From the NCBI RefSeq assembly GCF_000737315.1, contig NZ_JMCB01000006.1:930001-994000 (forward strand): DNA of 64,000 nucleotides, read 5' to 3'. Source of the DNA: Hyalangium minutum (GTDB taxonomy: Bacteria; Myxococcota; Myxococcia; Myxococcales; Myxococcaceae). Below, piece after piece: positions 251 through 22,758 of the stretch. Both the position numbers and the translations under genes were made by a program. Every line of letters starts with the position of its first letter. Within the stretch, counting starts at the first letter, position 1. The notes below the pieces were generated by a model. That model was not told where the DNA came from, searched no databases, and saw only the letters and a program-made list of their open reading frames with translations.

Positions 251-2056
251 TCAGCTGCCCTTCCACAGCCCGTGGCGGCGGGCCCTGCGCCCCAGGGTGA
301 CAGCGTCCATGCCCAGCGCCACCGCCGCGCGCCGCAGCACGCCGTCGTGCTGCTCCAGCGCCTCGCGGATCAGCTCCCGCTCCATGTGCTCCATCCGCGC
401 CTTCAGCGAGCCTCCTGTCCCCGTGTTCCCGGCTCGCGCGCCCACCAGGCTGGGAGGCAGCAGCCGCCGCGTCACCATCTCCCCCGGCTTGGACAGCAGC
501 GCCGCGCGCTCCATCACGTTGCGCAGCTCGCGCGCGTTGCCCGGCCACGCGTACGCCACCAGCGCCTCCTCCGCATCCGCCGCGATGCCGCTCGCCGAGC
601 GCTTCTGCGACCGGTTGAACAGCTCCAGGAAGTGCCGCGCCAGGGAGAGCACGTCCTCGGGCCGCTCCCGCAGCGGGGGCAAGTCGATGGTGAAGCTGTT
701 GAGCCGGTAGAAGAGGTCCGCACGGAACCGCCCAGCGCGGACCTCCTGGCCCAAGTCTCTGTTGCTCGCCGCCACCACGCGCACATCCACGTGGCGCACC
801 TGCGTGCCGCCCACCGGCCGCACATCCCCACCCTCCAGCACGCGCAGCAGCTTGGCCTGGAGGTTCGGCGTGGTGTTCTCGATTTCATCCAGGAAGATGG
901 TGCCGCCATCGGCCAGCACGAACAGGCCCGGATGGTCCGCCACCGCGCCCGTGAAGGCGCCCTTCACGTGGCCAAAGAGCTCGCTCTCCAGCAGCGTCTC
1001 CGTGAGCGCGCCGCAGTCCTGCACCACCAGCGGCACATCCTCGCGCCCGCTCAGCCGGTGGATGATGCGCGACAGCACCTCCTTGCCCGTGCCCGTCTCG
1101 CCCTGCAGCAGCACCGCCACCCGGTGGGGCGCCGCCACGCGCACCAGCTCCATCACCCGCTGCATCGCCGGGCTGGAGAACCCCGGGCCCTCGCCCGCCG
1201 CCGGAGCCGGAGCCCCAGGCGTCCCGCTCATCAGCGCGCGCTCGCGCAGCAGGTTGCGCTCCAGCTCCAGGCCCATGCGCCGCTGCTCGGTGCGCACGCC
1301 GTGCTCGCGCCCCGCGTCCAGCACCGCTTGCCGCACCTCCTCCACCCCAAACGAGGGCCCCAGCGTCCGGAACAGGCTCCCCGAGTTGAACAGCTCCAGG
1401 AGCCGCTCCGGTGCCGCGGGGGCGCAGTGGACGATGCGCGCGGCCAAATCACTCGGCGGCGCGGCCCCCGTGGCATCCACCTCGTCCATCCGTCGCGAGG
1501 CCAGCTGCTCCACCAGCGACAGCGCCCGCACCTCGTCCGTGCCTGCCACCAGCAGCACCGCCACGTCTCCGCGCGCCAGCAGCGCGTACACCTCCGCGGG
1601 CGTCTGCGCGAAGCCCAGCCGCGCGTGCCCCTCCAGCGCCGTGCGCAAGGTGCGCGCCTGTTCCTCCGTCGCGAACGCCACCGCCACGTGCAGCGCGCTC
1701 TCCACCAGGTAGCGCGCCAGGGTGACGCGATCCGAGCCCTCGAAGGACAGGAAGGCCAGGCCGAGCGCCGTCACGGTGCCGCCCTCGGCGCCCTCCGTGT
1801 CGTGCCGCCACCGCACCACTCCGCGCACCCGGATGCGCGCATGGGAGTCCGGCAGCGAGAACGCCATCTCCAGCTCCTCGCCCTCCCGAGGCCCCTCCGT
1901 CGCACCGCCCAGAGGACTGGCCACCAGGCCGATCCCCGTCTCGCTGATGTTGACCGACCAGCACCCGTGCAGCGCGGGCTGCGTCACCACCTGCACGTAC
2001 AGGGGCTTACGGGGACTGCGGTCCTTCAAGGGCAGGTCGCGGACGAGCTTCATCAT
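251..2056 (-). CDS. Sigma54-dependent enhancer-binding protein with N-terminal PilZ-like domain, pseudo-receiver, AAA+ and Fis HTH
   Basis: Walker A GETGTGKE, GAFTGA loop, FLDEIE, RADLFYRL, WPGNAREL and a C-terminal HTH. N-terminal DRSPR...NISETG is PilZ-like. Likely start is ATG 2056/2053 (the ORF track extends to TTG 2170). Confidence 0.92.
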   Translation of the reverse strand: MMKLVRDLPLKDRSPRKPLYVQVVTQPALHGCWSVNISETGIGLVASPLGGATEGPREGEELEMAFSLPDSHARIRVRGVVRWRHDTEGAEGGTVTALGLAFLSFEGSDRVTLARYLVESALHVAVAFATEEQARTLRTALEGHARLGFAQTPAEVYALLARGDVAVLLVAGTDEVRALSLVEQLASRRMDEVDATGAAPPSDLAARIVHCAPAAPERLLELFNSGSLFRTLGPSFGVEEVRQAVLDAGREHGVRTEQRRMGLELERNLLRERALMSGTPGAPAPAAGEGPGFSSPAMQRVMELVRVAAPHRVAVLLQGETGTGKEVLSRIIHRLSGREDVPLVVQDCGALTETLLESELFGHVKGAFTGAVADHPGLFVLADGGTIFLDEIENTTPNLQAKLLRVLEGGDVRPVGGTQVRHVDVRVVAASNRDLGQEVRAGRFRADLFYRLNSFTIDLPPLRERPEDVLSLARHFLELFNRSQKRSASGIAADAEEALVAYAWPGNARELRNVMERAALLSKPGEMVTRRLLPPSLVGARAGNTGTGGSLKARMEHMERELIREALEQHDGVLRRAAVALGMDAVTLGRRARRHGLWKGS

Positions 2057-2196
2057 TGAATTCCCATCCTTCAGAAGTGAAGTATGGACCCATTCCCCGG
2101 GAAATTCGAGCGCCTGTGCTGTTCGTATGCCTCCGGAGGCTTCAGGACTGAAGAGGGGTTCTGAAGCCAAACCCTCGTTTTCTCGTGGGTTGAGAG

Positions 2197-2213
2197 CTGG
2201 CCCGGCGCTTGCT
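2197..2213 (+). promoter_or_regulatory. Putative sigma54 -24/-12 promoter for the DUF2378 gene
   Basis: CTGGCCCGGCGCTTGCT: TGGC-N7-TTGCT with exact GG/GC spacing, divergent from an enhancer-binding protein gene. Confidence 0.6.
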
Positions 2214-2277
2214 CAAGGGAATGCACGGCAGCGGTTCGCGGCCTACCTCCATCAGGTCCCCACCGGAACTCATCTCA

Positions 2278-2904
2278 ATGCACGCACAACTCGAGTCAAT
2301 CAGACCGGTGATGGACCTGGACGTGGAGCGACAGCTCCGCCATCGGATGGCCATGGCCAGCCCCACGGATACGGTTCGCGGAATGTTCTTCAACGGGGCG
2401 CTCGAAGTCGCTCGCGCACTCGGTGGGAGCGAGGCCGCGGACCGCTGCCAGCAAATTGTGGGTGAGAAGCGCATCATCGATTTCTTCAACTACCCCGTGA
2501 CGGACCTTCTCCAACTGTCCTTGGAGATGATCCGGCTGGTGGGCGCTCACACGGGCGGTCACGCCGGAGTGCTGCGGCGCATGGGCACGCAGGCGGCGAA
2601 GGACTTTCTGGCCTCGTCGCCGGGCCGCACCATGCTGATGCTCACGGACAAGAACCCGCGCAGGGTGCTCAGCCAGCTGCCCGCCAGCTATCGCACGGTG
2701 GTGGGCTTCGGCGAGCGCAAGGTGAGCTGGTCCGCGGATGGCCGTACCGGCCTGTTCCTCGCCCAGCGTGACTTCATGCCGCCGGCGTACACCAAGGGCC
2801 TGCTCCAGGGCGTGCTCGAGGCGGTGGGTGCCAAGGGCGTCAATGTGAGCGGGCGTCCCACGGGGATGTTGGACAGCGAGTACGAAGTTTCCTGGGAGCG
2901 ATAG
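2278..2904 (+). CDS. DUF2378 (TIGR02265-type) myxobacterial protein
   Basis: TVRGMFFNGAL...FFNYPV...GRxFLASSPGRTML...LPASYRTVVGFGER...GLLQGVL pattern. Start is ATG 2278 or 2311. Confidence 0.85.
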   Translation: MHAQLESIRPVMDLDVERQLRHRMAMASPTDTVRGMFFNGALEVARALGGSEAADRCQQIVGEKRIIDFFNYPVTDLLQLSLEMIRLVGAHTGGHAGVLRRMGTQAAKDFLASSPGRTMLMLTDKNPRRVLSQLPASYRTVVGFGERKVSWSADGRTGLFLAQRDFMPPAYTKGLLQGVLEAVGAKGVNVSGRPTGMLDSEYEVSWER

Positions 2905-3022
2905 CACTCAACGGTTCGTGCGTTTTCCATGGCGCACGGGGAGCTCCCCCGTCAGAAGCACGTCGCCAGCCGGTGTCTCGGGGATGCGGCTGGGTGAAGG
3001 ACAAACCCCCCAAGGGGATGGG

Positions 3023-3244
3023 ATGAAGACGATGCGGCTCGATGAGGGGACGGTGCAGGCAGGCGAGGGCGGCGCGGCGCTGGTGATGCTGCCCGTCTGT
3101 GTTTGCGGCTCAGGCCTGGAGGCGCCTTCGGCCTCGGGTCCGGCGGCGCCGGTGCCCACCTGCCCCGCCTGTGGCGGGAGCCAGCTGAGGGCCTCGGCCC
3201 CCGAGCACCGGCACCTGCAGGATTTCTTGAGCGCCTTCGTCTGA
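3023..3244 (+). CDS. Small Cys4 zinc-ribbon-like protein (73 aa)
   Basis: Purine-rich AAGGGGATGGG before the ATG, strong GC3 codon bias, CVC...CPAC motif. Confidence 0.55.
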   Translation: MKTMRLDEGTVQAGEGGAALVMLPVCVCGSGLEAPSASGPAAPVPTCPACGGSQLRASAPEHRHLQDFLSAFV

Positions 3245-3630
3245 AGCGCGGGCGCTCGGCTTTCACGGCATAAGTTCGGATGACGGGTCTGTCCCCCTTG
3301 GCGGAGGATTGGGGTGGGGGACACTCCCGTCATCTTCTTTGCGGGCGCCGATGATTGATTGGCGCGCCCTATCACTGTCATCCAGACGTTGTCTTGGAGC
3401 CCTCGGGCAGCTGCGCCCTAGCGTTGCGCGCACCCATGAGGACTCGACCCATGCATCACGCCCGGCTGATCCGCGCTCATCCGTCCAGCTGTTTGGACTC
3501 AAACTGGGCGCTTTTTGACAGCGGGTGTGACTCCATTAAACTTTTATCACCGCCTCAATCCAGGGGGGCATCGCCTGGCTCCGTTCCTCACAGGAGCACT
3601 GGGCTCGGGTCTGTCGAGGACCCATCCAAC

Positions 3631-6600
3631 ATGAACCATTCCATTCGCTCGAAGCTCTCGAAGTGGGCCGTGCTCTTCGCCGGCGCGCTGCTGCTGGCGT
3701 GTTCCACGGAGCCGGCCTCCGCCAAGGGTGCCGCGGGCCCGCTGGGCGCGGCGGTGACATCGCTGGTTGCGGACGTGCCAACGGACCTGGCCGTCACGGT
3801 GACGGACGGCGTGACGACGGTCGCCCCGGGCAGCAACGTCACCTATACGATTGTGGTCACCAACAACGGTCCCAATACGGTGTCAGGGGCCACGCTGACA
3901 GACAACTTCCCCGCGGCGCTGATGGGGGTGAGCTGGACGTGCGCGCCGGCGGCGGCGTGCGGCACGACGAGCGGGACGGGCAACATCGCCGTCGTGCTGC
4001 AGTCGCTGGGCGTGGGCAGCTCGGCGACGTTCACGGTGACGGCGACGGTGAACCCCGCGGCGACGGGCACCACGATGACCAACACGGCCGTGGTGGCGTT
4101 GCCGACGGGATTCACGGATCCAGTTCCGGCCAACAACAGCGCTTCGGATACGGACACATTCAACCGCCGGGCAGACCTCTCGCTCACGCTCACCGACGCG
4201 CCGGACCCGGTGCAGGCGAGCGCGACGCTTACGTACACCCTCACCGTCAACAACGCGGGCCCGAGCAATGCGGCCACGACGACGGTGACGCTGACCCTGC
4301 CGTCGGGAGCGACCTATGTCAGCGGGACGGGTACGGGGTGGACGTGCACTCTGAGCGGTAGCACGGTGACGTGCACCCGGGCTTCGGCGGCGACGGGCGC
4401 GTCCCCCGCCATCACGGTGCTGGTGACGGCGCCGAATACGACCGGGACGATTGTCGCCACCGCCTCGGTGAGCAGCTCGACGACGGATCCCGTCACGGGC
4501 AACAACTCGACGCTGGCGACCACCACCGTCAATCGGGTCAACAACCCGCCGACGGCGAACAACGACACGTTGACGGTGGCTGAGGACAACCCCGCCACGG
4601 TGGTCAACGTGCTGAACAACGACACCAGCGCTCCGGACGTGGGCGAGACGCTGACGGTGATCTCGGTGACTCAGCCGGCCACGGGTGGCACGGTGACGCT
4701 CTCCAGCGGAGTGGTGCGTTTCACGCCCGCGCCCAACTTCAACGGGACTACGAGCTTCACGTACACCATCTCGGACGGCAACGGCGGCTTTGCGACGGCG
4801 ACGGTGAACGTGACGGTGACGCCGGTGAACGACCCGCCGACGGCGAACAACGACACGTTGACGGTGGCTGAGGACAGTGGCGCCACGGTGGTGGATGTGC
4901 TGGCCAACGACACGATTTTTCCGGACGTGGGTGAGACGCTGACGGTGGTCTCGGTGACCCAGCCGACCACGGGCGGTACGGTGTCGCTGGTAGGCGGCGT
5001 GGTGAGCTTCACCCCTGCGCCCAACTTCAACGGGACTACGAGCTTTACGTACACCATCTCGGACGGCGCTCTGATGGCCACGGCGACGGTGTCGGTGACG
5101 GTGACGCCGGTGAACGACCCGCCGACGGCGAACGACGACACGCTGACGGTGGCCGAGGACAGCGGCACCACGGTGGTCAACGTGCTGGCCAATGACTCGA
5201 TTTTTCCGGACGTAGGCGAAACGCTGACGGTGACGGCGGTGACTCAGCCCACCACGGGTGGCACGGTGTCGCTGAATGGCGGCGTGGTGCGCTTCACGCC
5301 CGCGCCCGACTTCAACGGCACGGTGACGTTCACATACACCATCTCGGACGGCGCCTTGACGTCCACGGCGACGGTGACGGTGACGGTGACGCCGGTGAAC
5401 GACGCGCCGACGGCGAACAACGACACGCTGACGGTGGCCGAGGACAGCGGCGCCACGGTGGTCAACGTGCTGGCCAACGACTCCAGCGCGCCGGACACGG
5501 GCGAGACGCTGACGATCGACTCGGTGACTCAGCCGACCACGGGCGGCACGGTGACGCTGAGCAACGGCACGGTGAGCTTCACTCCCGCGCCCGATTTCAG
5601 CGGGACCACGAGCTTCACGTACACGATCTCAGACGGCAACGGCGGCTTTGCGACGGCCACAGTGAACGTGACGGTGACGCCGGTGAATGACCCTCCGACG
5701 GCGAATGACGACACGCTGACGGTGGCCGAGGACAGCGGCGCCACGGTGGTCAACGTGTTGGTCAACGACACCAGCGCGCCGGACGTGGGCGAGACGCTGA
5801 CCGTGGTCTCGGTGACTCAGCCGGCCACGGGCGGCACGGTGACGTTGAGCAGCGGCGTGGTGACCTTCACCCCGGCGCCCAACTTCAACGGGACCACGAG
5901 CTTCAACTACACGATCACGGATGGCAACGGCGGTACGGACACCGCGACGGTGAACGTGACGGTGACGCCGGTGAACGACCCGCCGACGGCGAACAACGAC
6001 ACGCTGACGGTGGCCGAGGACAGCGGCGCCACGGTGGTGGATGTGCTGGCCAACGACACGTTTGCCCCGGACGTGGGTGAGACGCTGACGGTGACGGCGG
6101 TGACTCAGCCGGCCACGGGCGGCACGGTGGACCTGACGAACGGCACGGTGACCTTCACCCCGGCGCCGGACTTCAACGGCACGGTGACGTTCAGCTACAC
6201 AGTGTCGGATGGCAACGGGGGCACGGCCACGGCGACGGTGTCGGTGACGGTGACGGCGGTGAACGACCCGCCCACGGCCGTGGATGACGCATTCACCGTT
6301 CCGCGCAATAGCACCAACAACGTCCTGAATGTGCTGGCCAACGATACGATTTTTCCGGACGTGGGCGAGACGCTGACGGTGACGGCGGTGACCCAGCCGG
6401 CCAGCGGCACCGTGACGCTGACGGGCGGTGTGGTGAGCTACACCCCTCTCGCAGCCTTCATCGGGGACGTGACGTTCAGCTACACGGTGTCGGATGGCAC
6501 GTTGACGGCGACGGCGACGGTGACGGTGACGGTCTTCGGAACCAACATCCCGCCGACGGCGAACAACGACTCACTGACGGTGGCCGAGGACAGTGGCCCC

Positions 6601-9600
6601 ACGGTGGTGGATGTGCTGGCCAACGACACGATCGCACCCGATGTGGGTGAGACGCTGACGGTGACGGCGGTGACGCAGCCCACCTCGGGCGGCACGGTGA
6701 CGCTGGTGGGTGGCGTGGTGAGCTTTACCCCGGCAGCCGACTTCTTCGGCACGGTGACGTTCACGTACACGGTGTCCGACGGCAGCGGCGGCACGGACAT
6801 CGCGACGGTGACGGTGACGGTGACGCCGGTGAATGACCCGCCGAAGGCCAACGACGACACGCTGACCGTGGCGGAGGACAGCGGCGCCACCGTGGTGAAC
6901 GTGCTCGCCAACGACTTGTTCTCGCCGGACACGGGCGAGACGCTGACGGTCACGGCGGTGACGCAGCCCACCTCGGGCGGCACGGTGACACTGGCGGGGG
7001 GCGTGGTGAGCTTCACCCCGGCGGCCGACTTCAATGGCACGGTGACGTTCACGTACACGATCTCCGATGGCAACGGGGGCACGGCGACGGCGACGGTGAC
7101 GGTGACGGTGACGCCGGTGAATGACCCGCCGACGGCGAACAACGACGCACTGACGGTGGCCGAGGACAGCGGCGCCACGGTGGTGGACGTGCTGGCCAAC
7201 GACACGTTTGCCCCGGACATGGGCGAGACGCTGACGGTGACGGCGGTGACCCAGCCCACGACGGGTGGCTCGGTGACGCTCTCCGGAGGCACGGTGAGCT
7301 TCACGCCCGCGCTCAACTTCACCGGAACCACGACGTTCACGTACACCATCTCGGACGGCAACGGGGGTACGGCCACGGCGACGGTGACGGTGACGGTGAC
7401 GCCCGTGAACGATCCGCCGGACGCGGTGAATGACGCGATCACGGTGGGCGAGGACAGCACGGCCACGGTGGTGAACGTGCTGGCCAACGACACCTCTGCC
7501 CCGGACGTGGGCGAGACGCTGACGGTGGTCTCGGTGACTCAGCCAGCCACGGGCGGCACGGTGACGCTGAGCAGCGGCACGGTCATCTTCACCCCGGCCC
7601 CCGACTACTTCGGCACCACGACGTTCACGTACACGATCTCCGATGGCAACGGCGGTACGGACACCGCGACGGTGACGGTGACGGTGACGCCCGTGAACGA
7701 TCCGCCCACCGCCGCCAACGACACGTTGACGGTGGCCGAGGACAGCGGCGCCACGGTGGTGGACGTGCTGGGCAATGACTCGAGCGCTCCGGACGTGGGC
7801 GAGACGCTGACGGTGACGGCGGTGACGCAGCCGGTCTCGGGCGGCACGGTGACGCTGGTGGGCGGCGTGGTGAGCTTCACCCCGGCGCCCAACTTCAACG
7901 GGACCGTGACGTTCAGCTACACGTTGTCGGACGACAACGGTGGCACGGCGACGGCGACGGTGACGGTGACGGTGACGCCGGTGAACGATCCGCCGGACGC
8001 GGTGAACGACGCGATCACGGTGGGCGAGGACAGCGGCGCCACAGTGGTCAACGTGCTGGCCAACGACTCGAGTGCGCCGGACACGGGCGAGACGCTGACG
8101 GTGACGGCAGTGACTCAGCCGGCCACGGGTGGCACGGTGACGCTGAGCAGCGGCACGGTCATCTTCACCCCCGAGCCCGACTTCAATGGCACGGCGACGT
8201 TCACGTACACGATCTCCGACGGCAACGGCGGCACGGCGACGGCGACGGTGACGGTGACAGTGACGCCGGTGAACGATCCGCCTACCGCGGTGAATGACAC
8301 CTTCACCGTGGCGGAGGACAGCCCGGGCACCGTGCTGGACGTGCTGAGCAACGACACGTTTGCCCCGGATGTGGGCGAGACGCTGACGGTGACGGCAGTG
8401 ACGCAGCCGGCCACGGGTGGCACGGTGACGCTGAGCAACGGCACGGTCATCTTCACCCCGGCGCCGGACTTCGTGGGCACCACGACGTTCACGTACACGA
8501 TCTCGGACGGCAATGGCGGCACGTCGACGGCCACCGTGACGGTGGTCGCGACGGGGGTGAATGATCCGCCCACGGCGAACAACGACGCGCTGACGGTGGC
8601 CGAGGACAGTGGCCCCAATCCCCTCGATGTGCTGGTCAACGACTCGATTTTCCCGGACGTGGGCGAGACGCTGACGGTGACGGCAGTGACGCAGCCGGCC
8701 ACGGGTGGCACGGTGACGCTGAGCAACGGCACGGTCATCTTCACTCCGGCGCCGGACTTCAACGGCACGGTGACGTTCACGTACACGGTGTCGGACGGCA
8801 ACGGGGGCACGGCGACGGCGACGGTGACGGTGACGGTGACGCCGGTGAACGATCCGCCCACCGCGGTGAATGACTCCTTCACTGTGGCCGAGGACAGCTC
8901 GGGCAACGTGCTGGACGTGCTGGCCAATGACTCGATTGCGCCGGACACGGGCGAGACGCTCACGGTGACGGCGGTGACGCAGCCCTCCTCGGGCGGCACG
9001 GTGACGCTGAGCAACGGCACGGTGACCTTCACCCCGGCGCCGGACTTCAACGGCACGGTGACGTTCAGCTACACGGTGTCGGACGGCAATGGCGACACGG
9101 CGACGGCCACTGTGACGGTGACAGTGACGCCGGTGAGCGATCCGCCCATCGCGGTGAACGACACCTTCTCCGTCGCGGAGGACAGCGACCCCACGGTGCT
9201 GGACGTGCTGGCCAACGACGCGTCGCCGGATCCGGGCGAGACGCTGACGGTGACGGCGGTGACGCAGCCCACCTCGGGCGGCACGGTGGCGCTGACCAAC
9301 GGCCAGGTGATCTTCACGCCGGATCCCAACTTCAACGGCACGGTGACGTTCACGTACACGGTGTCCGACGGCACCTCGACGTCGACGGCGACCGTGACGG
9401 TGAATGTGACGCCGACGAACGACCCGCCGACGGGCATGCCGGACACCTACTCGGTGCCCGTCAACAGTGGCGCGACCACCTTCGACGTGCTGGCCAATGA
9501 CTCGAGTGCGCCGGACACGGGCGAGACGCTCACGGTGACGGCCGTCACTCAGCCGACCTCTTCGGGCGGCACGGTCACAGTGGCGCCGAATGGCTCGGGC

Positions 9601-12072
9601 GTGGTGTTCACGCCGGCACCGGGCTTCATGGGCACGACGACCTTCACGTACACGGTGTCCGACGGCCATGGCGGCACCGCCATCGTGATTGTCATCGTGA
9701 CCGTGGGCGGGGGCGACAGCGACGGCGATGGCCTGACCGACGTCGAGGAGGGCGAGCTGGGCACCAATCCGAACAACCCGGATACGGACGGCGACGGCCT
9801 CAATGACGGCCTCGAGAATGCGACGGGCACCAACCCGCTCGACGCGGACACGGACGACGACGGCATCACCGACGGCAACGAGGACAGCAACCACAACGGC
9901 ACCGTGGAAGCCAATGAGACCGATCCCCGCATCTTCGACACGGACGGCGACGGCCTGAGCGACGGCCTCGAGTCGGGCCTGGCTCAGCCCCAGAGCGAGG
10001 ACACGAATCTGGGCGTCTTCACGCCGGACGCCGATCCGTCCACTACGACCGATCCGCGCAACCCGGACACGGACGGCGACACGCTGAAGGACGGCACCGA
10101 GGACGCCAACCACAATGGTGCCGTGGGCGACACGGAGACGGATCCGAACGATCCCGACTCGGACCACGGTGGCCTGAACGACGGCGAGGAGGTCAACGCG
10201 GGCAGTGACCCGCTCGACTACACGGACGACCTGATCGTCGCGGGCCGCGGCTGCGCCTCCACGGGCTCGGGCACGCTGCTGCCGCTGGTGTTGCTGCTCG
10301 CCCTGCCGTTGCTGCGCCGCCGCCAGGCCCTCCGCGTCTCGGGGAAGGCCTGGGGGGTGTTGGGGCTGCTGGCCGCCGTGCTCGTCTCGGCTCCTGTCCG
10401 AGCCCAGTCCACCCCCGAGGCCTCTCAGGGCATCGACGTGCAGCAGTTCAAGCCGGGGCCGGGCTGGAAGGACGTGCTGGGCGTGCAGAGCGCCCAGGTG
10501 GGCCGGCACCTCGGCTGGAACGTGGGCTTGTCCTTCAACTACGCGAAGGACCCGCTCAACTTCCTGCGGCCGCGCACCGACGACTTCGTCTACGAGATCG
10601 TCAAGAACCAGTACACCTTCGACCTGATGGGCGCCGTCTCGCTGTTCGACCGGTTCGAGCTCGGCGTGGCGCTGCCCATCACCTCGCAGAGCTCGGCGTC
10701 CGCCGCCTCCGTGTCGCCGCTGCTCTCCGAAGGCATCGATGCCACGGGCGTGGGCGATCTGCGCTTGGTGCCGAAGGCGCGCCTGCTCTCGCTGGACAGT
10801 GGGGTGCACCTGGGCGTGACGGTGCCGGTGATCCTGCCCACCTCGGGGGGCAAGGAGTTCCTGGGCCGCAGCGGGGTGGCGTTCTTCCCGCGGCTGCTCG
10901 GCGAGTGGACCAGTGACGGGGGCACGCGCGTGCTGGCCAACGTGGGCATCAACGTCCAGCCCCAGGAGCGCTTCTACAACCTGAACGTCAGCAACGAGTT
11001 CGCCTACGGGCTCGGCACGGAGATTCCCTTCAACGTGGGCAAGCACCGGCTGGCCGCTGAGGCCACGCTGGTGGGCGCCCTGGGCATGAAGGAGTCGAAC
11101 ACCGAGGAGCGTCCGCTGGAACTGCTCGCGGCGATGAAGTACCGCTTCTCGGACGCGCTGGCGATGCACCTCGGTGGTGGCCCGGGCCTCACGCGCGGCT
11201 ACGGCACGCCGGGCTTCCGCGTGCTGGCGGGCGTCATCTGGACCGAGACGGAGAAGGCTGCTCCTGCCCGCGTCGAGCCGCCGCCTCCGCCGCCCGTGAA
11301 GGTGTGCCCGCAGGGCCCCGAGGACATGGACGGCTTCCAGGACAACGACGGCTGCAACGATCCGGACAACGACAACGACGGCATCCTGGACGGCAACGAC
11401 CGCTGCCCGAACGAGCCGGAGACGCAGAACGGCTTCGAGGACGCGGACGGCTGCCCGGACGAGCTGCCTCCGCCTCCGCCGGTGGACACGGACGGCGACG
11501 GCCTCACGGATGACAAGGATCGCTGCCCGCAGGCCGCCGAGGACAAGGACGGCTTCCAGGATGAGGACGGCTGCCCGGATCCGGACAACGACAAGGACGG
11601 CGTGCTGGACGCGGCGGACAAGTGCCCGACCGAGCCGGAGACCATCAACGGCGTCGCGGACGACGACGGCTGCCCGGACAAGGGCAAGGAGAAGGTCCGC
11701 ATCGAGGGTGGGAAGATCGTCATCCTCGACAAGGTGTACTTCGCCACGAACAAGGACGTGATCCTCGCCAAGTCGTTCCCGTTGCTGCAGCAGGTGGGCC
11801 AGGTGCTGCGCGCCAACCCGGAGATCCTGAAGGTGCGCGTGGAGGGCCACACCGACAGCCAAGGCAAGGACGAGGCCAACATGGATCTGTCGCAGCGCCG
11901 AGCCAACAGCGTGCGCAAGCGCCTCATCGAGCAGGAGGGCATTGCGCCCGAGCGGCTCGAGGCGGCGGGCTTCGGCGAGACGCGGCCGGTGGATACCAAC
12001 GAGACGGCCAAGGGCCGCGAGAACAACCGCCGCGTGGAGTTCATCATCCTCGAGACGGCGGAGACGCCCTGA
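3631..12072 (+). CDS. Giant lipoprotein adhesin: two DUF11-like domains, 18 Ig/cadherin-like repeats, TSP3-like Ca-binding repeats, internal MYXO-CTERM, TraB-like outer-membrane beta-barrel, TSP3 repeats and OmpA domain
   Basis: Lipobox LLAC (Cys codon at 3700). DLAVTVTD/ADLSLTLTD DUF11-like motifs, NDPPTANND repeats, DSDGDGLTD repeats, and OmpA motifs RVEGHTD, LSQRRANSV and NRRVEF. Start taken at ATG 3631 (the ORF track extends to 3355). Confidence 0.9.
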   Translation: MNHSIRSKLSKWAVLFAGALLLACSTEPASAKGAAGPLGAAVTSLVADVPTDLAVTVTDGVTTVAPGSNVTYTIVVTNNGPNTVSGATLTDNFPAALMGVSWTCAPAAACGTTSGTGNIAVVLQSLGVGSSATFTVTATVNPAATGTTMTNTAVVALPTGFTDPVPANNSASDTDTFNRRADLSLTLTDAPDPVQASATLTYTLTVNNAGPSNAATTTVTLTLPSGATYVSGTGTGWTCTLSGSTVTCTRASAATGASPAITVLVTAPNTTGTIVATASVSSSTTDPVTGNNSTLATTTVNRVNNPPTANNDTLTVAEDNPATVVNVLNNDTSAPDVGETLTVISVTQPATGGTVTLSSGVVRFTPAPNFNGTTSFTYTISDGNGGFATATVNVTVTPVNDPPTANNDTLTVAEDSGATVVDVLANDTIFPDVGETLTVVSVTQPTTGGTVSLVGGVVSFTPAPNFNGTTSFTYTISDGALMATATVSVTVTPVNDPPTANDDTLTVAEDSGTTVVNVLANDSIFPDVGETLTVTAVTQPTTGGTVSLNGGVVRFTPAPDFNGTVTFTYTISDGALTSTATVTVTVTPVNDAPTANNDTLTVAEDSGATVVNVLANDSSAPDTGETLTIDSVTQPTTGGTVTLSNGTVSFTPAPDFSGTTSFTYTISDGNGGFATATVNVTVTPVNDPPTANDDTLTVAEDSGATVVNVLVNDTSAPDVGETLTVVSVTQPATGGTVTLSSGVVTFTPAPNFNGTTSFNYTITDGNGGTDTATVNVTVTPVNDPPTANNDTLTVAEDSGATVVDVLANDTFAPDVGETLTVTAVTQPATGGTVDLTNGTVTFTPAPDFNGTVTFSYTVSDGNGGTATATVSVTVTAVNDPPTAVDDAFTVPRNSTNNVLNVLANDTIFPDVGETLTVTAVTQPASGTVTLTGGVVSYTPLAAFIGDVTFSYTVSDGTLTATATVTVTVFGTNIPPTANNDSLTVAEDSGPTVVDVLANDTIAPDVGETLTVTAVTQPTSGGTVTLVGGVVSFTPAADFFGTVTFTYTVSDGSGGTDIATVTVTVTPVNDPPKANDDTLTVAEDSGATVVNVLANDLFSPDTGETLTVTAVTQPTSGGTVTLAGGVVSFTPAADFNGTVTFTYTISDGNGGTATATVTVTVTPVNDPPTANNDALTVAEDSGATVVDVLANDTFAPDMGETLTVTAVTQPTTGGSVTLSGGTVSFTPALNFTGTTTFTYTISDGNGGTATATVTVTVTPVNDPPDAVNDAITVGEDSTATVVNVLANDTSAPDVGETLTVVSVTQPATGGTVTLSSGTVIFTPAPDYFGTTTFTYTISDGNGGTDTATVTVTVTPVNDPPTAANDTLTVAEDSGATVVDVLGNDSSAPDVGETLTVTAVTQPVSGGTVTLVGGVVSFTPAPNFNGTVTFSYTLSDDNGGTATATVTVTVTPVNDPPDAVNDAITVGEDSGATVVNVLANDSSAPDTGETLTVTAVTQPATGGTVTLSSGTVIFTPEPDFNGTATFTYTISDGNGGTATATVTVTVTPVNDPPTAVNDTFTVAEDSPGTVLDVLSNDTFAPDVGETLTVTAVTQPATGGTVTLSNGTVIFTPAPDFVGTTTFTYTISDGNGGTSTATVTVVATGVNDPPTANNDALTVAEDSGPNPLDVLVNDSIFPDVGETLTVTAVTQPATGGTVTLSNGTVIFTPAPDFNGTVTFTYTVSDGNGGTATATVTVTVTPVNDPPTAVNDSFTVAEDSSGNVLDVLANDSIAPDTGETLTVTAVTQPSSGGTVTLSNGTVTFTPAPDFNGTVTFSYTVSDGNGDTATATVTVTVTPVSDPPIAVNDTFSVAEDSDPTVLDVLANDASPDPGETLTVTAVTQPTSGGTVALTNGQVIFTPDPNFNGTVTFTYTVSDGTSTSTATVTVNVTPTNDPPTGMPDTYSVPVNSGATTFDVLANDSSAPDTGETLTVTAVTQPTSSGGTVTVAPNGSGVVFTPAPGFMGTTTFTYTVSDGHGGTAIVIVIVTVGGGDSDGDGLTDVEEGELGTNPNNPDTDGDGLNDGLENATGTNPLDADTDDDGITDGNEDSNHNGTVEANETDPRIFDTDGDGLSDGLESGLAQPQSEDTNLGVFTPDADPSTTTDPRNPDTDGDTLKDGTEDANHNGAVGDTETDPNDPDSDHGGLNDGEEVNAGSDPLDYTDDLIVAGRGCASTGSGTLLPLVLLLALPLLRRRQALRVSGKAWGVLGLLAAVLVSAPVRAQSTPEASQGIDVQQFKPGPGWKDVLGVQSAQVGRHLGWNVGLSFNYAKDPLNFLRPRTDDFVYEIVKNQYTFDLMGAVSLFDRFELGVALPITSQSSASAASVSPLLSEGIDATGVGDLRLVPKARLLSLDSGVHLGVTVPVILPTSGGKEFLGRSGVAFFPRLLGEWTSDGGTRVLANVGINVQPQERFYNLNVSNEFAYGLGTEIPFNVGKHRLAAEATLVGALGMKESNTEERPLELLAAMKYRFSDALAMHLGGGPGLTRGYGTPGFRVLAGVIWTETEKAAPARVEPPPPPPVKVCPQGPEDMDGFQDNDGCNDPDNDNDGILDGNDRCPNEPETQNGFEDADGCPDELPPPPPVDTDGDGLTDDKDRCPQAAEDKDGFQDEDGCPDPDNDKDGVLDAADKCPTEPETINGVADDDGCPDKGKEKVRIEGGKIVILDKVYFATNKDVILAKSFPLLQQVGQVLRANPEILKVRVEGHTDSQGKDEANMDLSQRRANSVRKRLIEQEGIAPERLEAAGFGETRPVDTNETAKGRENNRRVEFIILETAETP
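4537..9705 (+). repeat. 18 tandem coding repeats of about 288 bp (about 96-aa Ig/cadherin-like units)
   Basis: Units start near 4540, 4828, 5113, 5398, 5686, 5974, 6261, 6541, 6831, 7119, 7407, 7696, 7984, 8271, 8559, 8848, 9136 and 9418. Confidence 0.92.
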
Positions 12073-15018: not shown

Positions 15019-17469
15019 ATGCTGAAGCAACGGTTGCTGGCGCTTGCGCTCACGGGTGCACTCACGGGCTGTATCGTCGAGCCCTCTCCGGAAGACCCCT
15101 TCGATCCCAACTTTCCGGACGGCCCCAGCACGATGATGCCGGACCTGGAGATCGAGTCGGTGACAGGTCCCTCCCAGCTGGGCCCGAACTCTCAGGACTT
15201 TCTGCGCGCGCGGCTGTGCAACCGGGGCGGCAGCTTCGCGATCACCGACGTGTCCTTCTTCCTCTCCAAGGACAAGGTGTTGGATCCGCTGGACAGGCGG
15301 GTGGGCACCAGCGGGCAGGCGACGGTGGAGGCGGGCGCCTGCCAAGAAGTGATGGCGCAAGTGAAGATGCAGGGAGTGGATCAGGACGGCTACTACCTGT
15401 TCGCCGTGGCGGATCCGAACGACTGGACCCTGGAGTCGTCGGAGACCAACAACGAGCGCATGGGGGCCAAGCTCTGGGTGGACCGGAACGTGCCCCCCGT
15501 GCCGACGCTCTCGTGGTTGACGGGCAACGGGCAGCCGAAGCTGCTGGCCTCTTCGGAGTTGGGCGTCTCGATTCGTGTCTACCAGGGCAGCACCTGCTCG
15601 GGCGAGCCGGTGGTGAACGGCTACCCCAGCGAGAATGGGTACTGTGAGATGCCCATCGACATCTCCTCGTACCCGGCCGCGAGCTACTCGGCGCGGGCGT
15701 ACGACTCCGTGGGGAACGCCTCGGGGTGCGGCTCCATCCAGGCGCCCTCGGGGTACGGCTACGACGTCACTCCGCCCGCGCCTCCGGTCGTCACCCAGGC
15801 GAACTGGAGCTACGGCACCACGCAGCACGCGCTGACCGTGAAGGGCACCACGGAGGCAGGGGCCGAGGTGGGCGTGTTCGTGGACGTGGCCTGCACGGGC
15901 ATCCCGGCGGCCACGGTGTTTGCGAGCTCCTCGGGGGCGTTCACGGCGGAGCTGACCGTGGCGGCTCAGTCGGGAGGCAGCATCCGCCGGGTGTACGTGG
16001 CCGCGCGGGATGCGGCCTACAACGAGTCCTCGTGCGTGGAGGGTCCCCGGTACGAGACGCCGTGCCAGACGGGCTACGCCAACTGCGATGGGAACCCGGC
16101 CAACGGCTGTGAGGCCATCCTCACGGAGGACGAGGCGAACTGCGGCGCGTGCGGCACCACCTGCCAGGGCTCCGGCAACGCCACGGGGGTGTGCATGTCG
16201 GGGACGTGCGGCGTGGCGTGCCCGGTGGGCCGCTACGACTGCGACGGGAACCTGTCCAACGGCTGCGAGTCCACCTACGCGTGCAGCCCCTCGGCGTGCA
16301 CAATCAACGCCTCGGCGGAGCTGGCCATCACGGCGCTGTCGGTGGTGGAGGATCCGGTGCGGACGGCGCCGGGTGGGGCGTGGCACTTCGGCACGCTGAT
16401 GCGGGCCATGGCGGGGGATCAGGATCCCTCCACGCTGGTGCGCAACTGGCTGAAGACGTGGGCCACGGCGCAGACGATCAACGGGCTCACGGTGCCGGCG
16501 CGCACGCAGATGCTGACGAAGGTGCTGACGCCGTGGGAGCAGAAGAGCGGCGGGGCGAGCCGCCCGCTGGACTTCAGCAAGGCGCCGTTCCGGCTGCTGG
16601 CCATCATGAACCGCATGGACCTGCGCAACCCGGGAGCGCAGGCGGGAGAGGGCCGCTTCGTGTTCGGCGTGCTGGACAGCTCGGGCAACCCGCTGGAGTT
16701 CACGATCATCTTCGAGTACGCGCTGCCGGGCGGCACGCCGGAGGCCATCCAGGGCTGGGCTCGGGGCTGGCATGAGCTGGGGCAGCTGGGGCTGAGCCAC
16801 CCGGACTACAAGACGAAGCTGCAGGCGCTGACGGATCGCTTCGCGAAGTCGGGGGTGATGGCGGGCCGGCCGTTCGGCAACGCGCTCAACCAGATCCGGA
16901 CCAACGAGGTGGATCTGGCCGATCCGTGGGAGATGCGTGAGTTCAACCTGACGACGGCGGGCCTGCAGCCGGCCACGGTGAAGCTGACGCCGGCCTTCAG
17001 CTTCAACAACACGGGCGCGCTGGGCGACTTCCTGCGGGCCAACCAGGCGGACATCCTCGCCGAGCGGCACACGGTGCCGACGACCCTCGGGAGCCAGCGG
17101 TTCCTGGCGGGCTCGGCGATTGTGCCCGAGGACTTCTTCTGGCGGGCGCCGAGCGTGGCGGCCGAGGTGCGGCACAAGTTCTCGGTGAACACGTGCAGCG
17201 GGTGCCACGCGGGGGAGACGGCCACGGACTTCGTGCACGTGGCTCCGCGGCGGGCAGGGCAGACCGCGGCGCTGTCGGCATTCCTCCGGGGTGGGACGGT
17301 GGTGGATCCGGTGTCGGGGACGTCACGGTCCTTCAATGACCTGGCCCGCCGCTCGGAGGACCTGGCGACCCTGGTGTGCGGCACGGCGGGGACGCAGAGC
17401 CTGAAGGATGTGGAGACGTTCGGCGGCTTCCCGGCGCCCTCCAACCTGCCCCGCGCCCGCGTGCACTGA
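15019..17469 (+). CDS. Lipoprotein with CARDB-like and Ig-like domains, Cys-rich repeats and a C-terminal CxxCH (possible heme c) domain
   Basis: Lipobox LTGC, PDLEIESV...DPNDWTLESSETNN (CARDB-like), repeated NCDGNxxNGCE, and CSGCH near the C-terminus. Confidence 0.8.
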   Translation: MLKQRLLALALTGALTGCIVEPSPEDPFDPNFPDGPSTMMPDLEIESVTGPSQLGPNSQDFLRARLCNRGGSFAITDVSFFLSKDKVLDPLDRRVGTSGQATVEAGACQEVMAQVKMQGVDQDGYYLFAVADPNDWTLESSETNNERMGAKLWVDRNVPPVPTLSWLTGNGQPKLLASSELGVSIRVYQGSTCSGEPVVNGYPSENGYCEMPIDISSYPAASYSARAYDSVGNASGCGSIQAPSGYGYDVTPPAPPVVTQANWSYGTTQHALTVKGTTEAGAEVGVFVDVACTGIPAATVFASSSGAFTAELTVAAQSGGSIRRVYVAARDAAYNESSCVEGPRYETPCQTGYANCDGNPANGCEAILTEDEANCGACGTTCQGSGNATGVCMSGTCGVACPVGRYDCDGNLSNGCESTYACSPSACTINASAELAITALSVVEDPVRTAPGGAWHFGTLMRAMAGDQDPSTLVRNWLKTWATAQTINGLTVPARTQMLTKVLTPWEQKSGGASRPLDFSKAPFRLLAIMNRMDLRNPGAQAGEGRFVFGVLDSSGNPLEFTIIFEYALPGGTPEAIQGWARGWHELGQLGLSHPDYKTKLQALTDRFAKSGVMAGRPFGNALNQIRTNEVDLADPWEMREFNLTTAGLQPATVKLTPAFSFNNTGALGDFLRANQADILAERHTVPTTLGSQRFLAGSAIVPEDFFWRAPSVAAEVRHKFSVNTCSGCHAGETATDFVHVAPRRAGQTAALSAFLRGGTVVDPVSGTSRSFNDLARRSEDLATLVCGTAGTQSLKDVETFGGFPAPSNLPRARVH

Positions 17470-17954: not shown

Positions 17955-18033
17955 GGCTCTGGCTCCCGCGAAGTGTTGACTCGGTGCCAGTATCCCCTCA
18001 ATGGCTGACACCCAAGGGCGATACACTGAGGGC

Positions 18034-19113
18034 ATGTCATGGGCCCTTGCGCTGCTGACCTCCTCCCTCCTGGCTCAAACCCCTCCGCCCGTCACCTCCA
18101 CGGTCGAGGTCAAGCTGCCCTTCGTCTCCACCCTCCACGTCGAGAACGATGTGCTCGCCAAGAGCGACCGCTTCTACTCGAACGGCATCCGCCTGGAGCA
18201 CTCGGGTGAGTACGATCGGTGCCGCGATCTCGCGCTCGCTCTCGGCTTCCCAGGCAGCATCGAGGACCGGTACCCGTGCGGCGGCTCGCTGGCGCAGAAC
18301 ATGTACACGCCCAACCGCATCGTCCCCAATGAAGGCGAGGAGCCCTGGCCCAATCCGGATGACAGGCCCTATGGCGGATGGCTCCACGCGGGCCTCCTGT
18401 TCCAGTACCTCCATGCGGCCGAGCGGCCTGTGGACTCCTCTCGGCTCACGCTCCAGGCCACCGTCGGCGTGACCGGCCCGGCCGCCTTCGCGGGAGAGAC
18501 GCAGCGCGCATGGCACTCGGCGCTCAATCACATCTTCGGCCGCACCGTGGCCAAGCTCCCCATCGGCTGGGAGAAGCAGCTGCCCACCGAGCCTGCCTTC
18601 CACCTTTCCGTGCTGCGCGAGAAGACCCTGCTGTGGAGCCCCTATGTGGACGCCTCCTGGTCCGCGGGCGCCATGCTCGGCACGGTGTTCGTCAATGCGA
18701 GCCTCGGTGCCACCGTGCGCGCTGGTGTGCTCGCGCGGCCGTTCGGGCTCGCGCCCATCATGCCCTCCGTTCGCCGCGTGAAGCAGGCCCAGGGCGCGGC
18801 GGAAGGTCAGCCTGTGGAGGCGAGTGCGCAGCCCGAGACCCCGGAGCGCATCTGGGAGGCGTACTTCTTCGCGCGCGGACAAGCGCGGTTCGTGGCGCGC
18901 AACCTGTTCCTGGATGGGACCCTCTTCCTCCCCAGCGTCAGCGTGCGCAAGACGCCCTTCGTGGGGGACAGCGAGTTCGGTGGGGCCGTGCGCACCGGCG
19001 GCTTCCAGCTCGACCTGAGTATGGTCTTCCGCTCACAGGAGATGGCCGAGCCCCCCAATGGCCGGGTCTCCGGCCACCGCTTCACGCAGATCCAGCTCTC
19101 GTACCTGCACTGA
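18034..19113 (+). CDS. lpxR: Lipid A 3-O-deacylase LpxR family (DUF2219) outer-membrane beta-barrel
   Basis: ENDV...DRFYSNG, QNMYTP, DRPYGGWL, GVTGP...ETQRAWH, VARNLFLDG. Signal peptide present. Confidence 0.82.
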   Translation: MSWALALLTSSLLAQTPPPVTSTVEVKLPFVSTLHVENDVLAKSDRFYSNGIRLEHSGEYDRCRDLALALGFPGSIEDRYPCGGSLAQNMYTPNRIVPNEGEEPWPNPDDRPYGGWLHAGLLFQYLHAAERPVDSSRLTLQATVGVTGPAAFAGETQRAWHSALNHIFGRTVAKLPIGWEKQLPTEPAFHLSVLREKTLLWSPYVDASWSAGAMLGTVFVNASLGATVRAGVLARPFGLAPIMPSVRRVKQAQGAAEGQPVEASAQPETPERIWEAYFFARGQARFVARNLFLDGTLFLPSVSVRKTPFVGDSEFGGAVRTGGFQLDLSMVFRSQEMAEPPNGRVSGHRFTQIQLSYLH

Positions 19114-22100: not shown

Positions 22101-22307
22101 GTCCCACACCACCTCGGAGCCTCGGCGGAAGTACCAGACGCGGTGCCAGGGAATCTCTCCGTCCGGAACGAAGGCCTCCAGCGGCATCTCCTCCATCTGC
22201 TCGGAGTGCGAGTCGTAGCCGATGACGAACTCGCGAGCGTCGAGCCGGGGATCCCAGCGAATGCGATGGTAGACCTCGCGGCTCGTCTTGAAGCGATCCT
22301 GAGACAT
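19125..22307 (-). CDS. Multidomain RNA end-processing protein: MJ1316/DUF504, EEP phosphatase/nuclease, 2H phosphoesterase, eukaryote-type poly(A) polymerase
   Basis: SREVYHRIRWDP...IPWHRV (MJ1316). SFNV/ALQEV/GDFN/SDHF (EEP). PHVTL and PHLSV (2H). GSYLLG...SDVD, RSLNG, RAWAKARGVYS.ALGYLGGLSWA, MPIVAP..P.RNTARNVS (PAP). Start ATG 22307. Confidence 0.9.
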   Translation of the reverse strand: MSQDRFKTSREVYHRIRWDPRLDAREFVIGYDSHSEQMEEMPLEAFVPDGEIPWHRVWYFRRGSEVVWDRAKRIDTLHTLIPPEPEAPASPPPPRPPAHEKHPFTPMPFYRFDSKTSAWVEASPPPASPPETLPALTELTVASFNVLFDLYEPELLDTGRRTPAAISLLRSIDADIIALQEVTPSFLRALLDTPWIREHFFLSDGPAATTVTPYGVVLLSRFPFASLEQSIFSRDKRTIAGEIALRGGPLWVATLHLTSNKDPHSSTTRAAQIRTVLHQAQALEARGSEAPDLLILGDFNFGDGAPEEQSFEEAGFSDAWKVLRPGEPGYTYDPASNRLAAQTTSAGQSQRFDHLMIRSPSGRLKPRETSLFGEEPLSGRPAPGGGPLFVSDHFGLSCTLARETSSRERPAPVPLQGPPRVLSVPPVHQSAVVLIPPEELWGPIETLRSKYDRTYERWMPHVTLLYPFVPEEHFDEAEALITEALRELEPFQVTLSGFSHFEHRGSVTAWLSPEDRPHGAIKALQASLQNALPQCDEQGRKSENGFTPHLSVGQLPRSSPAEIRRTLSAWEQNWKPFTFEAHEVCLISRRGEGPFEVRRRVQLGGGKRTGPGSGSNSGSGTPTTKKPDPAEGAPAPQEKTGLLRSVLVSRGEWESEDARQKRTEAVSRLEAVCSGLGLQLHPYGSYLLGTGSAGSDVDAVAVGPTHLSREDFAQALLSALALEDPTTSGRFVADAAIPMVKLSLGGVHFDVSYASRPEGVEPCPPPELLERHGARLDTAGFRSLNGWADTTALLEAVKREGAGLERFRAVLRAVRAWAKARGVYSHALGYLGGLSWAVMAAWSSLRAPREAASTDERLLAHFFETFASWRWPQPVTVTPETARYHPEGKRDLMPIVAPALPPRNTARNVSRSALQVLREELTRARELVQRARTEETEASWEALFERVDFSGVASARLVVSIEAPSSEARAAAAGWVLGHLTALVYRLEGDRRLFARPFPNERPEGPFIIGLSTREHGGAEALSAKAGSPMARTVDEFRESFHTWSHRPPEASLSVQLTHS

Positions 22308-22758
22308 GGCGACAGCCCTCGAGAAGGAGAGGAGGACTCGGAGGGCTCTCGGTTCCAGAGCCGGCCTCAGCCGAGCGTACGCGGGAAGGCCCCCGCGCGC
22401 CGCACCTGGACGCCCCCCTCGTGAAGAGGCTGACACCCCATCATCCGGGGGACGTTGCCGCGAATCCGGTCCGTCAATCCGTCATCCCTCTTCACGCACC
22501 GTGCGGTACCCGCAGCGGATCCCAGTGACATGAAACGGCGGCGCAGGGACGAGCGAGACCTGGGTTCTCGCCGCACATCCGGTGCTGTTACCACTCAATC
22601 GCTACACCTCCGCCGCAGATCTCCAAGCCCGTTGCGCGAAACGCGGGTGCGCCAAGGTTCTCGAATCCCAGAAGTGATGAGTAGTGGCCGCCACAAATCG
22701 GGGAAGGTCAGCAAGACGGAGGAAATGGGACATGCCCCAACGACGACGCAACCAAGGA

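Follow-up and report, generated by a model that had tools for sequence, protein, structure and literature searches.

A single reading frame of Hyalangium minutum with an internal MYXO-CTERM-type tag and a second signal-peptide-like stretch: a candidate envelope polyprotein joining an adhesin to a TraB-like outer membrane protein

Introduction

The MYXO-CTERM tag normally stands at the C terminus of a protein where, as in TraA, it is processed by a myxosortase. In a stretch of 64,000 nucleotides (nt) from Hyalangium minutum (RefSeq assembly GCF_000737315.1, contig NZ_JMCB01000006.1, positions 930,001 to 994,000; hereinafter the window), a plus-strand gene at 3631-12072 carries a tag of this type in the middle of a very long open reading frame (ORF), with a TraB-like outer membrane protein following in the same frame. 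How could such a sorting tag serve a protein that continues, uninterrupted, into another? A preliminary description of this DNA, made from its letters and ORFs, had suggested that myxosortase and signal peptidase I cleave the product of the ORF, yielding a surface adhesin together with a TraB-like partner of its own. Here, we follow up that suggestion by computational analysis. An envelope polyprotein with these two cleavages, which we infer from sequence, is the best-supported reading of the gene, and one in which we place moderate confidence.

The traA and traB genes overlap by 4 bases (PMC3325183), their products form complexes measured at a 1:1 ratio, and TraB is made up of a signal peptide, a β-barrel, TSP3 repeats, and an OmpA domain (PMC12045341). 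Cleavage by MrtX has been shown for the TraA and MXAN_4924 tags, and in E. coli (PMC11980579). In the same paper, Guo, Haft and Wall (mBio 2025) put forward this architecture and processing idea for MXAN_5598 of Myxococcus xanthus, the N-terminal part of which they proposed to be processed and surface anchored and the gene of which adjoins ftsA and ftsZ. These authors called internal tags rare and suggested gene fusion; a second signal peptide went unmentioned. The polyprotein idea, having been proposed for MXAN_5598, is therefore not new in kind. What we add is the second, cleavable-looking signal and its homology, the breadth of the family, the selection acting on the junction, and the split and relic states of the gene.

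Results

The plus-strand frame is uninterrupted over 3355-12072, with ATG 3631 as its likely start, which gives a precursor of adhesin and TraB-like outer membrane protein of 2,813 codons plus a stop (3631-12072); a syntenic and intact orthologue exists (locus L002, below), and the G+C content at third codon positions (GC3) is 0.91. The parts follow one another in the order lipobox signal, two DUF11 domains, 18 tandem-95 repeats, TSP3, tag, second signal, barrel, TSP3, and OmpA. By hydropathy, the 2,813 residues contain just three membrane-grade hydrophobic stretches (the N-terminal signal, the tag helix, and the second stretch), and not one stop codon lies across the tag/second-signal junction. 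The positions at which the preliminary description had placed the LLAC lipobox, the Cys codon of the tag (10252), and the VRA|QS boundary (about 10404) were exact.

This arrangement recurs widely. A protein search with the last 690 residues of the window protein returned many homologues that cover 97-99% of the query and carry adhesin domains together with OmpA; their N-terminal modules vary (tandem-95, DUF11, or Big_6/He_PIG), and their junctions run through G-x-G-C-[AS]-[ST], a helix, RRR, a loop, a second helix, A-x-A|Q, and SQAIDVQQYKPGP. A profile built on junction plus barrel (A1), scanned against named Myxococcota genomes, yielded 79 loci, and at the DNA level an in-frame tag lies upstream in 60 of 81 barrel genes, the window gene included. 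These fused genes belong to Hyalangium, Archangium, Cystobacter, Vitiosangium, Corallococcus, Myxococcus, Pyxidicoccus, and Citreicoccus. The open frame upstream of the barrel has a median length of 1,765 residues (several exceed 3,400), and every complete fused ORF starts with a Sec signal. A search of 1.84 billion cluster representatives (at 50% identity) gave 1,718 barrel relatives at E ≤ 1e-30, and the tag is present in at least 107 of the best 150 clusters (104 by pattern and three by eye), in proteins of up to 4,861 residues. Among the distant fused members, at 29-39% identity, are a Haliangium sp. protein and other metagenome-derived proteins. The fused form predominates in a large Myxococcota family that has several paralogues per genome, and the conservation of the junction is, by sequence comparison, far beyond chance.

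The tag itself (10243-10323) is tripartite, GRGC-ASTGSG-TLLPLVLLLALPLL-RRR (full segment, GRGCASTGSGTLLPLVLLLALPLLRRR), with the TGC codon of Cys2208 at 10252-10254. Its helix, TLLPLVLLLALPLL, reaches a hydropathy peak of 2.39 and is followed by RRR; 582 residues lie beyond this cluster, which makes the tag internal and not C-terminal. The model TIGR03382 (GC_trans_RRR, named MYXO-CTERM sorting domain) scores the internal segment at 20.4 bits, above its cut-off of 15.85. Conservation was assessed in 44 fused proteins with identities down to 29%. The Cys is invariant in them (44/44), Gly occupies position -3 relative to it in 43 and position -1 in 40, and 40 retain the third Arg, which in the window protein is R2231. 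The signature G-x-G-C-[AS]-[ST] is invariant or nearly so. We calculated the ratio of nonsynonymous to synonymous variation (pN/pS), here and below, over the window gene together with its six closest relatives; at 0.35, the tag is by this measure under purifying selection.

Immediately downstream (10324-10404; QALRVSGKAWGVLGLLAAVLVSAPVRA) come a basic loop (QALRVSGK) and a signal-peptide-like h-region that ends in V-R-A. The predicted features are those of a type I signal, namely a basic segment (RRRQALRVSGK), the h-region AWGVLGLLAAVLVSAP (hydropathy of the second stretch, 2.28), and then V-R-A|Q. The proposed signal peptidase I site, VRA|QS, falls at 10404|10405, where CAG (Q) at 10405 opens the sequence QSTPEA. 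Among the 44 fused proteins, the residue at -3 is A, V, T, S, or G in 42, that at -1 is Ala in 41, and that at +1 is Gln in 37. Across the 60 fused loci, median lengths are 20 residues for the tag helix and 18 for the second hydrophobic stretch; the loops between them are 5-15 residues long and contain 4-6 Lys/Arg each, with a total of four acidic residues over all loci. A short, basic, and nearly acid-free loop between two helices fits the positive-inside rule and a hairpin whose loop is cytoplasmic.

The strongest single argument for the mechanism set out below comes from standalone paralogues of ca. 590-620 residues in Myxococcus, Pyxidicoccus, and Corallococcus. These proteins begin with an ordinary N-terminal signal peptide, which aligns with the second stretch of the fused proteins; here, too, the A-x-A|Q motif closes the signal, shortly ahead of SQAIDVQQYKPGP. 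On the evidence of this alignment, the second stretch is homologous to real signal peptides, in agreement with the preliminary description, which had read it as one. That description had also named the conservation of the internal motif, in advance, as one of the points on which its proposal should stand or fall; as the counts above make plain, the Cys (44/44), the third Arg (40/44), and the -1 Ala (41/44) are kept.

The part of the protein that follows this site (the C-part) comprises a TraB-homologous outer membrane β-barrel with a FapF/COG4313-like fold (10405-11250), Cys-containing TSP3 repeats that link the barrel to OmpA (11302-11691), and an OmpA-like peptidoglycan-binding domain (11692-12069; PF00691 at residues 2703-2800, also seen in the structure model). 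The sole model matched by the barrel alone is that of TraB, NF033763 (E 5.5e-31, profile positions 20-312), and the TSP3 and OmpA regions cover profile positions 313-502. The C-part as a whole scores 326.6 bits on this model. With the TraB cut-off set at 700, we reject membership of TraB proper; judged by sequence, the C-part is a paralogue of TraB along its full length and not TraB itself. MXAN_5598-type and standalone relatives score 193-342 bits on the same model, and none of nine standalone relatives reaches the cut-off. All of these comparisons were made through the NF033763 profile, as true TraB is absent from the sampled proteins. A Pfam scan of the barrel alone gave no match; PF13557, which is recorded on many homologues, was not reached by the window barrel. 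The barrel has a pN/pS of 0.41 and the TSP3 region one of 0.44.

An AlphaFold2 model of the mature C-part (mean predicted local distance difference test [pLDDT] score, 83) has strands over residues 38-280, where pLDDT exceeds 90; the OmpA fold is predicted with confidence, and the TSP3 linker is ill defined. The closest Protein Data Bank structure to the TSP3 and OmpA part is the Capnocytophaga OmpA protein 5wtl, which the TSP3 repeats resemble. The barrel is matched best, in structure, by FapF, the Pseudomonas transporter of amyloid polypeptide subunits, and by the COG4313 channel 4rl8 (0.68), with template modeling scores (TM-scores) of 0.6-0.69 and E values of 1e-11 to 1e-8; unlike the C-part, these proteins have no TSP3 or OmpA part, and their identity to the window barrel is only 14-16%. 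The likeness is a hint that barrels of the TraB type might act as conduits and not simply as anchors; a role in transport is only a lead.

Natural variants of the gene bear on whether its two halves can exist apart. In Myxococcus sp. Y35 (L039), a 2,811-residue open ORF (1703-10138 of that locus) ends in the same tag, here at a true C terminus. After a gap of 121 nt from the adhesin stop comes a barrel gene (10260-12071) that supplies an ATG and a signal peptide of its own. This is a naturally split version of a gene that the preliminary description had read as encoding two proteins. The orthologous barrel gene of M. xanthus AM003 (L042) is preceded by a gene for a response regulator, the adhesin having been lost. 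Standalone genes of Corallococcus (L056, L062, L066, L073, and L076; P0047, P0048, and P0052) have, ahead of the signal peptide, decayed TSP3 sequence and an RRRR remnant in which the Cys has been lost; these remnants look like relics of a formerly fused adhesin. In a neighbor-joining tree of the barrels, all standalone genes group in a single clade that is nested among the fused ones. Taken together, the split, lost, and relic states and this tree suggest that the two halves function as polypeptides in their own right and that the standalone genes are products of fission and loss rather than of fusion. The tree is a rough one, computed from distances and without true TraB, so that the direction of change stands as a lead and not as a result.

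In the same tree, the clade of the window gene has as its sister the fused genes of Archangiaceae that are fts-linked. Such linkage is seen at 36 of the 79 loci, in Myxococcus, Corallococcus, Pyxidicoccus, Citreicoccus, Archangium, Hyalangium, and Cystobacter, and a fused gene of this family holds a fixed place between ftsA and ftsZ across two families, Myxococcaceae and Archangiaceae. At L019 (2302-13447), the locus of the MXAN_5598 orthologue, the order is ddl-ftsQ-ftsA, a fused gene of 2,755 residues, and ftsZ. At another locus, that of Myxococcaceae bacterium GXIMD 01537 (L051), two tag-plus-barrel genes lie in tandem between ftsA and ftsZ, with barrel motifs at nt 5094 and 11675; the first of them has only 239 open codons before its barrel.

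The window gene is a relative of these genes at a different place. Like MXAN_5598, it combines a large adhesin, an internal MYXO-CTERM tag, an outer membrane barrel, and OmpA, with the barrel family in common; over junction and barrel, the L019 protein and the window protein share 53% identity, and their scores on the TraB model are almost equal (324.8 and 326.6 bits). Unlike MXAN_5598, which lies between ftsA and ftsZ and has adhesin modules of its own, the window gene carries tandem-95 and DUF11 modules, belongs to a separate clade, and is flanked by DUF2378/sigma-54 activator genes and a hybrid histidine kinase gene, with a CARDB protein gene also among its neighbors. No match to ftsA or ftsZ was found within the window. 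On these grounds of neighborhood and clade, we reject orthology with MXAN_5598; by sequence, the window gene is its paralogue in the same family. A syntenic orthologue with an intact ORF, 81% identical to the window protein, is present in Hyalangium versicolor H56D21 (L002), where the neighbors are also shared (sigma-54 activator, 86% identity; DUF2378, 75%; hybrid kinase, 78%; CARDB protein, 60%).

The adhesin part (N-part) of the window protein, roughly 2,200 residues, begins with a Sec signal recognized by hydropathy (3631-3702; MNHSIRSKLSKWAVLFAGALLLAC) that contains a candidate lipobox, L-L-A-C, with Cys24 encoded at 3700-3702. The lipobox Cys is kept in L002 (LIAAC|STEP), L005, and L007 and is replaced by Ser in L008; another candidate cut is a signal peptidase I site, ASA|K, at residues 29-31. 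The adhesin part may be lipidated at both ends, that is, through Cys24 and through Cys2208 of the tag. The signal is followed by two DUF11 domains (PF01345; two stretches within 3784-4530, the better at residues 52-174) and by a stalk of 18 tandem-95/Big_9/cadherin-like repeats of 94-96 residues each (4536-9705), which Tandem Repeats Finder reports as an array at 4536-9555 with a period of 288, 17.5 copies, and 81% matches. Acidic, calcium-binding TSP3_bac repeats (9706-10242), modeled by AlphaFold2 at high pLDDT, then lead up to the tag. There are only five Cys residues before the tag, and neither a PA14 domain nor a Cys-rich stalk (the features of TraA, TIGR04201) is present in the N-part, which has DUF11, tandem-95/Big_9, and TSP3 instead. 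Nor is any TraA-type model among the best 25 of the 44 NCBIfam matches of the window protein. The preliminary description had spoken of a TraA/TraB-like pair; for the C-part, a full-length TraB paralogue, the comparison holds, but by these comparisons the N-part has no TraA homology, and only the tag is common to both.

A sigma-70-like promoter match (TTGACA-16-TAAACT, plus strand, 3515-3542) lies about 90 nt 5′ of the ATG, with 10 of 12 positions matching where 0.1 such matches were expected in shuffled sequences; this is a consensus match only. Antisense ORFs of up to 1,763 codons (e.g., 6571-11862 on the minus strand) overlap the adhesin gene; we reject them as genes and regard them as by-products of the 68% G+C content and the repeat array.

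Elsewhere in the window are three predicted genes for surface lipoproteins on the plus strand (15019-17469, CARDB/Big_6; 22684-25557, FG-GAP/HYR; 28153-31569, Big_1/LTD), none of which (0 of 3) has a MYXO-CTERM tag at its C terminus, and an LpxR gene (18001-19113). On the minus strand, 19125-22436 encodes a protein of 1,103 residues with an unusual combination of MJ1316 RNA cyclic-end recognition, EEP nuclease, and 2H phosphoesterase (2′-5′ RNA ligase family) domains together with poly(A)-polymerase-like nucleotidyltransferase and central domains; by its domains, it looks like an RNA repair protein. Also on this strand, a gene for 1,601 residues (44518-49323) combines WD40 repeats with a GTPase domain of the Roc/Ras type and a phosphoesterase domain of the calcineurin-like type, and an ORF of 1,661 residues (53274-58259), the coding signal of which is strong (GC3, 0.94), matches nothing in Pfam at E ≤ 1e-5.

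Discussion

The mechanism that we favor is pieced together from the sequence and from published work on related proteins. The N-terminal signal (putatively of the lipoprotein type in the window subclade) would start Sec export of the adhesin part, and the MYXO-CTERM-type helix would then stop transfer, leaving the RRR..R..K loop in the cytoplasm. The second stretch would reenter the membrane as an internal signal peptide and restart export of the C-part; its own C-terminal end would lie in the periplasm, with the A-x-A site facing signal peptidase I. Cleavage by signal peptidase I at VRA|QS would free the TraB-like protein (a 12-strand-type barrel with TSP3 and OmpA), to be inserted in the outer membrane by the β-barrel assembly machinery (BAM) and to bind peptidoglycan. 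At this stage the adhesin would be held by the tag; the tag Cys would be lipidated and the tag cleaved by MrtX, a protease of the CPBP family, as in the published model. A helical hairpin of about 50 residues would be left over in the inner membrane, where it is presumably degraded. One translation event would in this way produce a surface adhesin and a wall-anchored outer membrane partner at 1:1, a TraA/TraB-like module from a single ORF. Such a fixed stoichiometry of the two products fits, by analogy, the measured TraA:TraB ratio. Export through the twin-arginine translocation (Tat) pathway, using RRR and the second stretch, was considered and dropped by reasoning; 8-12 residues lie between the arginines and the h-region, the Sec translocon is already engaged with the upstream part, and barrel proteins are transported in an unfolded state.

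Several observations weigh against this account. The check with MYXO-CTERM models that the preliminary description had called for gave a divided answer; TIGR03382 recognizes the internal tag (20.4 bits, cut-off 15.85), but TIGR03901 gives it 13.2 bits, under its cut-off of 20. MrtX has been tested on truly C-terminal tags only, whereas the tail of the window tag runs on into another membrane segment. With a pN/pS of 0.69, the loop and second signal evolve faster than the rest of the gene; fast evolution is usual for signal peptides, yet it takes some force from the argument by conservation. The AlphaFold2 helices of the junction (model residues 288-307 and 313-323) reach pLDDT values of only 42-64. 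Finally, in the window subclade a GTG or ATG codon with a Shine-Dalgarno-like stretch stands at the start of the second stretch, so that separate synthesis of the TraB-like protein is possible.

The last of these points underlies one alternative, namely that ribosomes also initiate at GTG 10357 (or TTG 10309), so that much of the TraB-like protein would be made separately, from what would mainly be overlapping in-frame genes with unfixed stoichiometry. The GTG (10357-10359, plus strand) is preceded, at a distance of 8 nt, by GGGGAAGG (10341-10348); a start codon with a Shine-Dalgarno-like stretch occurs in 5 of the 60 fused loci (the window, L001, L002, L007, and L075), and Met, Val, or Leu stands in the start column in P0001, P0006, and P0044. 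Against this, any in-frame ATG, GTG, or TTG is present in only 31 of the 60, and given that a Shine-Dalgarno-like stretch accompanies one in so few, internal initiation is not a feature of the family. Moreover, the stretch in question merely encodes Gly-Lys, the product from GTG 10357 would be without a basic n-region, and no promoter-like site was found within the gene near the junction. Even if such a start were used, ribosomes from upstream would read through regardless, and hence the junction would need processing all the same. Internal initiation is therefore unsupported for the family as a whole, and we keep it as a minor and rather improbable rival for the window subclade.

Alternatively, signal peptidase I may be the only enzyme at work, the tag being a plain stop-transfer anchor and the adhesin either remaining tethered to the inner membrane by a C-terminal hairpin or being freed by another protease. 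The shortfall on TIGR03901 and the testing of MrtX on terminal tags alone would suit this idea, as would the finding that surface localization of TraA and MXAN_4924 partly persists without MrtX, for which other proteases were suggested (PMC11980579). Yet a mere membrane anchor would need neither the invariant Cys nor the near-invariant G-x-G-C-[AS]-[ST] of the 44 fused proteins; the tag is constrained (pN/pS, 0.35), and the split form bears the same motif at a true C terminus. Internal LPXTG and PGF-CTERM tags are, to go by titles cited in PMC11980579, processed, and a cadherin-like adhesin of 2,200 residues has no evident role in the periplasm. We give this alternative a low probability as well.

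A third possibility, that the chain is never cleaved and sits as a permanent inner membrane hairpin with both large parts in the periplasm, draws on the helix-turn-helix that AlphaFold2 builds at the junction. Because only about 10 residues separate the cleavage site at the end of the second helix from the barrel, an uncut barrel would be unable to reach the outer membrane. The A-x-A|Q motif is also conserved and aligns with the cleaved signal peptides of the standalone paralogues. In addition, MXAN_5598 is listed among the outer membrane vesicle (OMV) cargo proteins of M. xanthus (PMC4158809), which agrees with release from the inner membrane; the listing is silent on fragments, and its supplement holds no peptide-level data on MXAN_5598. 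We consider an uncleaved chain very unlikely. Finally, an artifact or a fresh, pseudogene-like fusion confined to this genome can be dismissed as next to impossible. It might have come from a lost stop, since a single substitution turns TAG into the CAG at 10324, or from a frameshift or a fault of assembly, the latter being a risk with 18 near-identical repeats. However, the same junction is in frame at 60 of 81 loci from independent genomes, among which are complete chromosomes as well as the syntenic orthologue L002; the junction is under purifying selection (pN/pS), and no fused locus has a stop codon there.

Processing by both myxosortase and signal peptidase I thus remains the reading that we prefer, and it has partial counterparts elsewhere. 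TraA and TraB (MXAN_6895/MXAN_6898), the outer membrane exchange pair, are, like the two parts of the window protein, a MYXO-CTERM surface protein and a protein of signal, barrel, TSP3, and OmpA, encoded back to back. They differ in being two ORFs in different frames where the window gene is one; the window N-part, moreover, is without a PA14-like variable domain and a Cys-rich stalk, and no role in membrane exchange can be claimed for the window protein.

Polyproteins in which an anchor is followed by an internal signal, so that signal peptidase, cutting on the far side of the membrane, yields two proteins from one ORF, are familiar from FbcH (cytochrome b/c1) of Bradyrhizobium japonicum and from the structural polyproteins of flaviviruses. 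Those proteins are unrelated to the present one, involve neither a lipid-anchoring tag nor a second protease, and leave both products in one membrane. As for tags in unusual positions, an ArtA substrate of Haloferax volcanii with a non-terminal PGF-CTERM, and proteins with an internal LPXTG, are reportedly processed, judging by the titles of the studies concerned. As far as these titles tell, such tags likewise have motif, helix, and basic cluster in mid-protein; they differ in enzyme and tag, belong to archaea and Gram-positive bacteria, and are accompanied by no second signal peptide or downstream functional protein.

Those parts of the earlier inference that lend themselves to in silico testing all came out favorably, and at the level of sequence the inference is to that extent supported. 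A further and more speculative idea is that the one-ORF form is ancestral and normal for Myxococcota adhesin/anchor modules, that the conserved cleavable hairpin is a dedicated device for 1:1 codelivery, through one translocon, of a lipid-anchored surface adhesin and its FapF-like barrel partner bound to peptidoglycan, and that TraA/TraB and the standalone barrels are later fission products; the barrel may also help its own adhesin to reach or hold the surface. We offer this only tentatively and think it somewhat doubtful.

If the proposed processing is true, the family would provide a bacterial envelope polyprotein from which two different membrane proteases release a surface adhesin and an outer membrane anchor, and this would be an unusual way to fix both the stoichiometry and the codelivery of two partners. 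The published remark on a single protein understates the size of this family, in which, with at least 107 clusters, the fused form is common and not "rare." The fusions also serve as natural "Rosetta stone" evidence that MYXO-CTERM adhesins generally pair with TraB-like barrels, a pairing that bears on the origin of TraAB-type cell-cell recognition modules.

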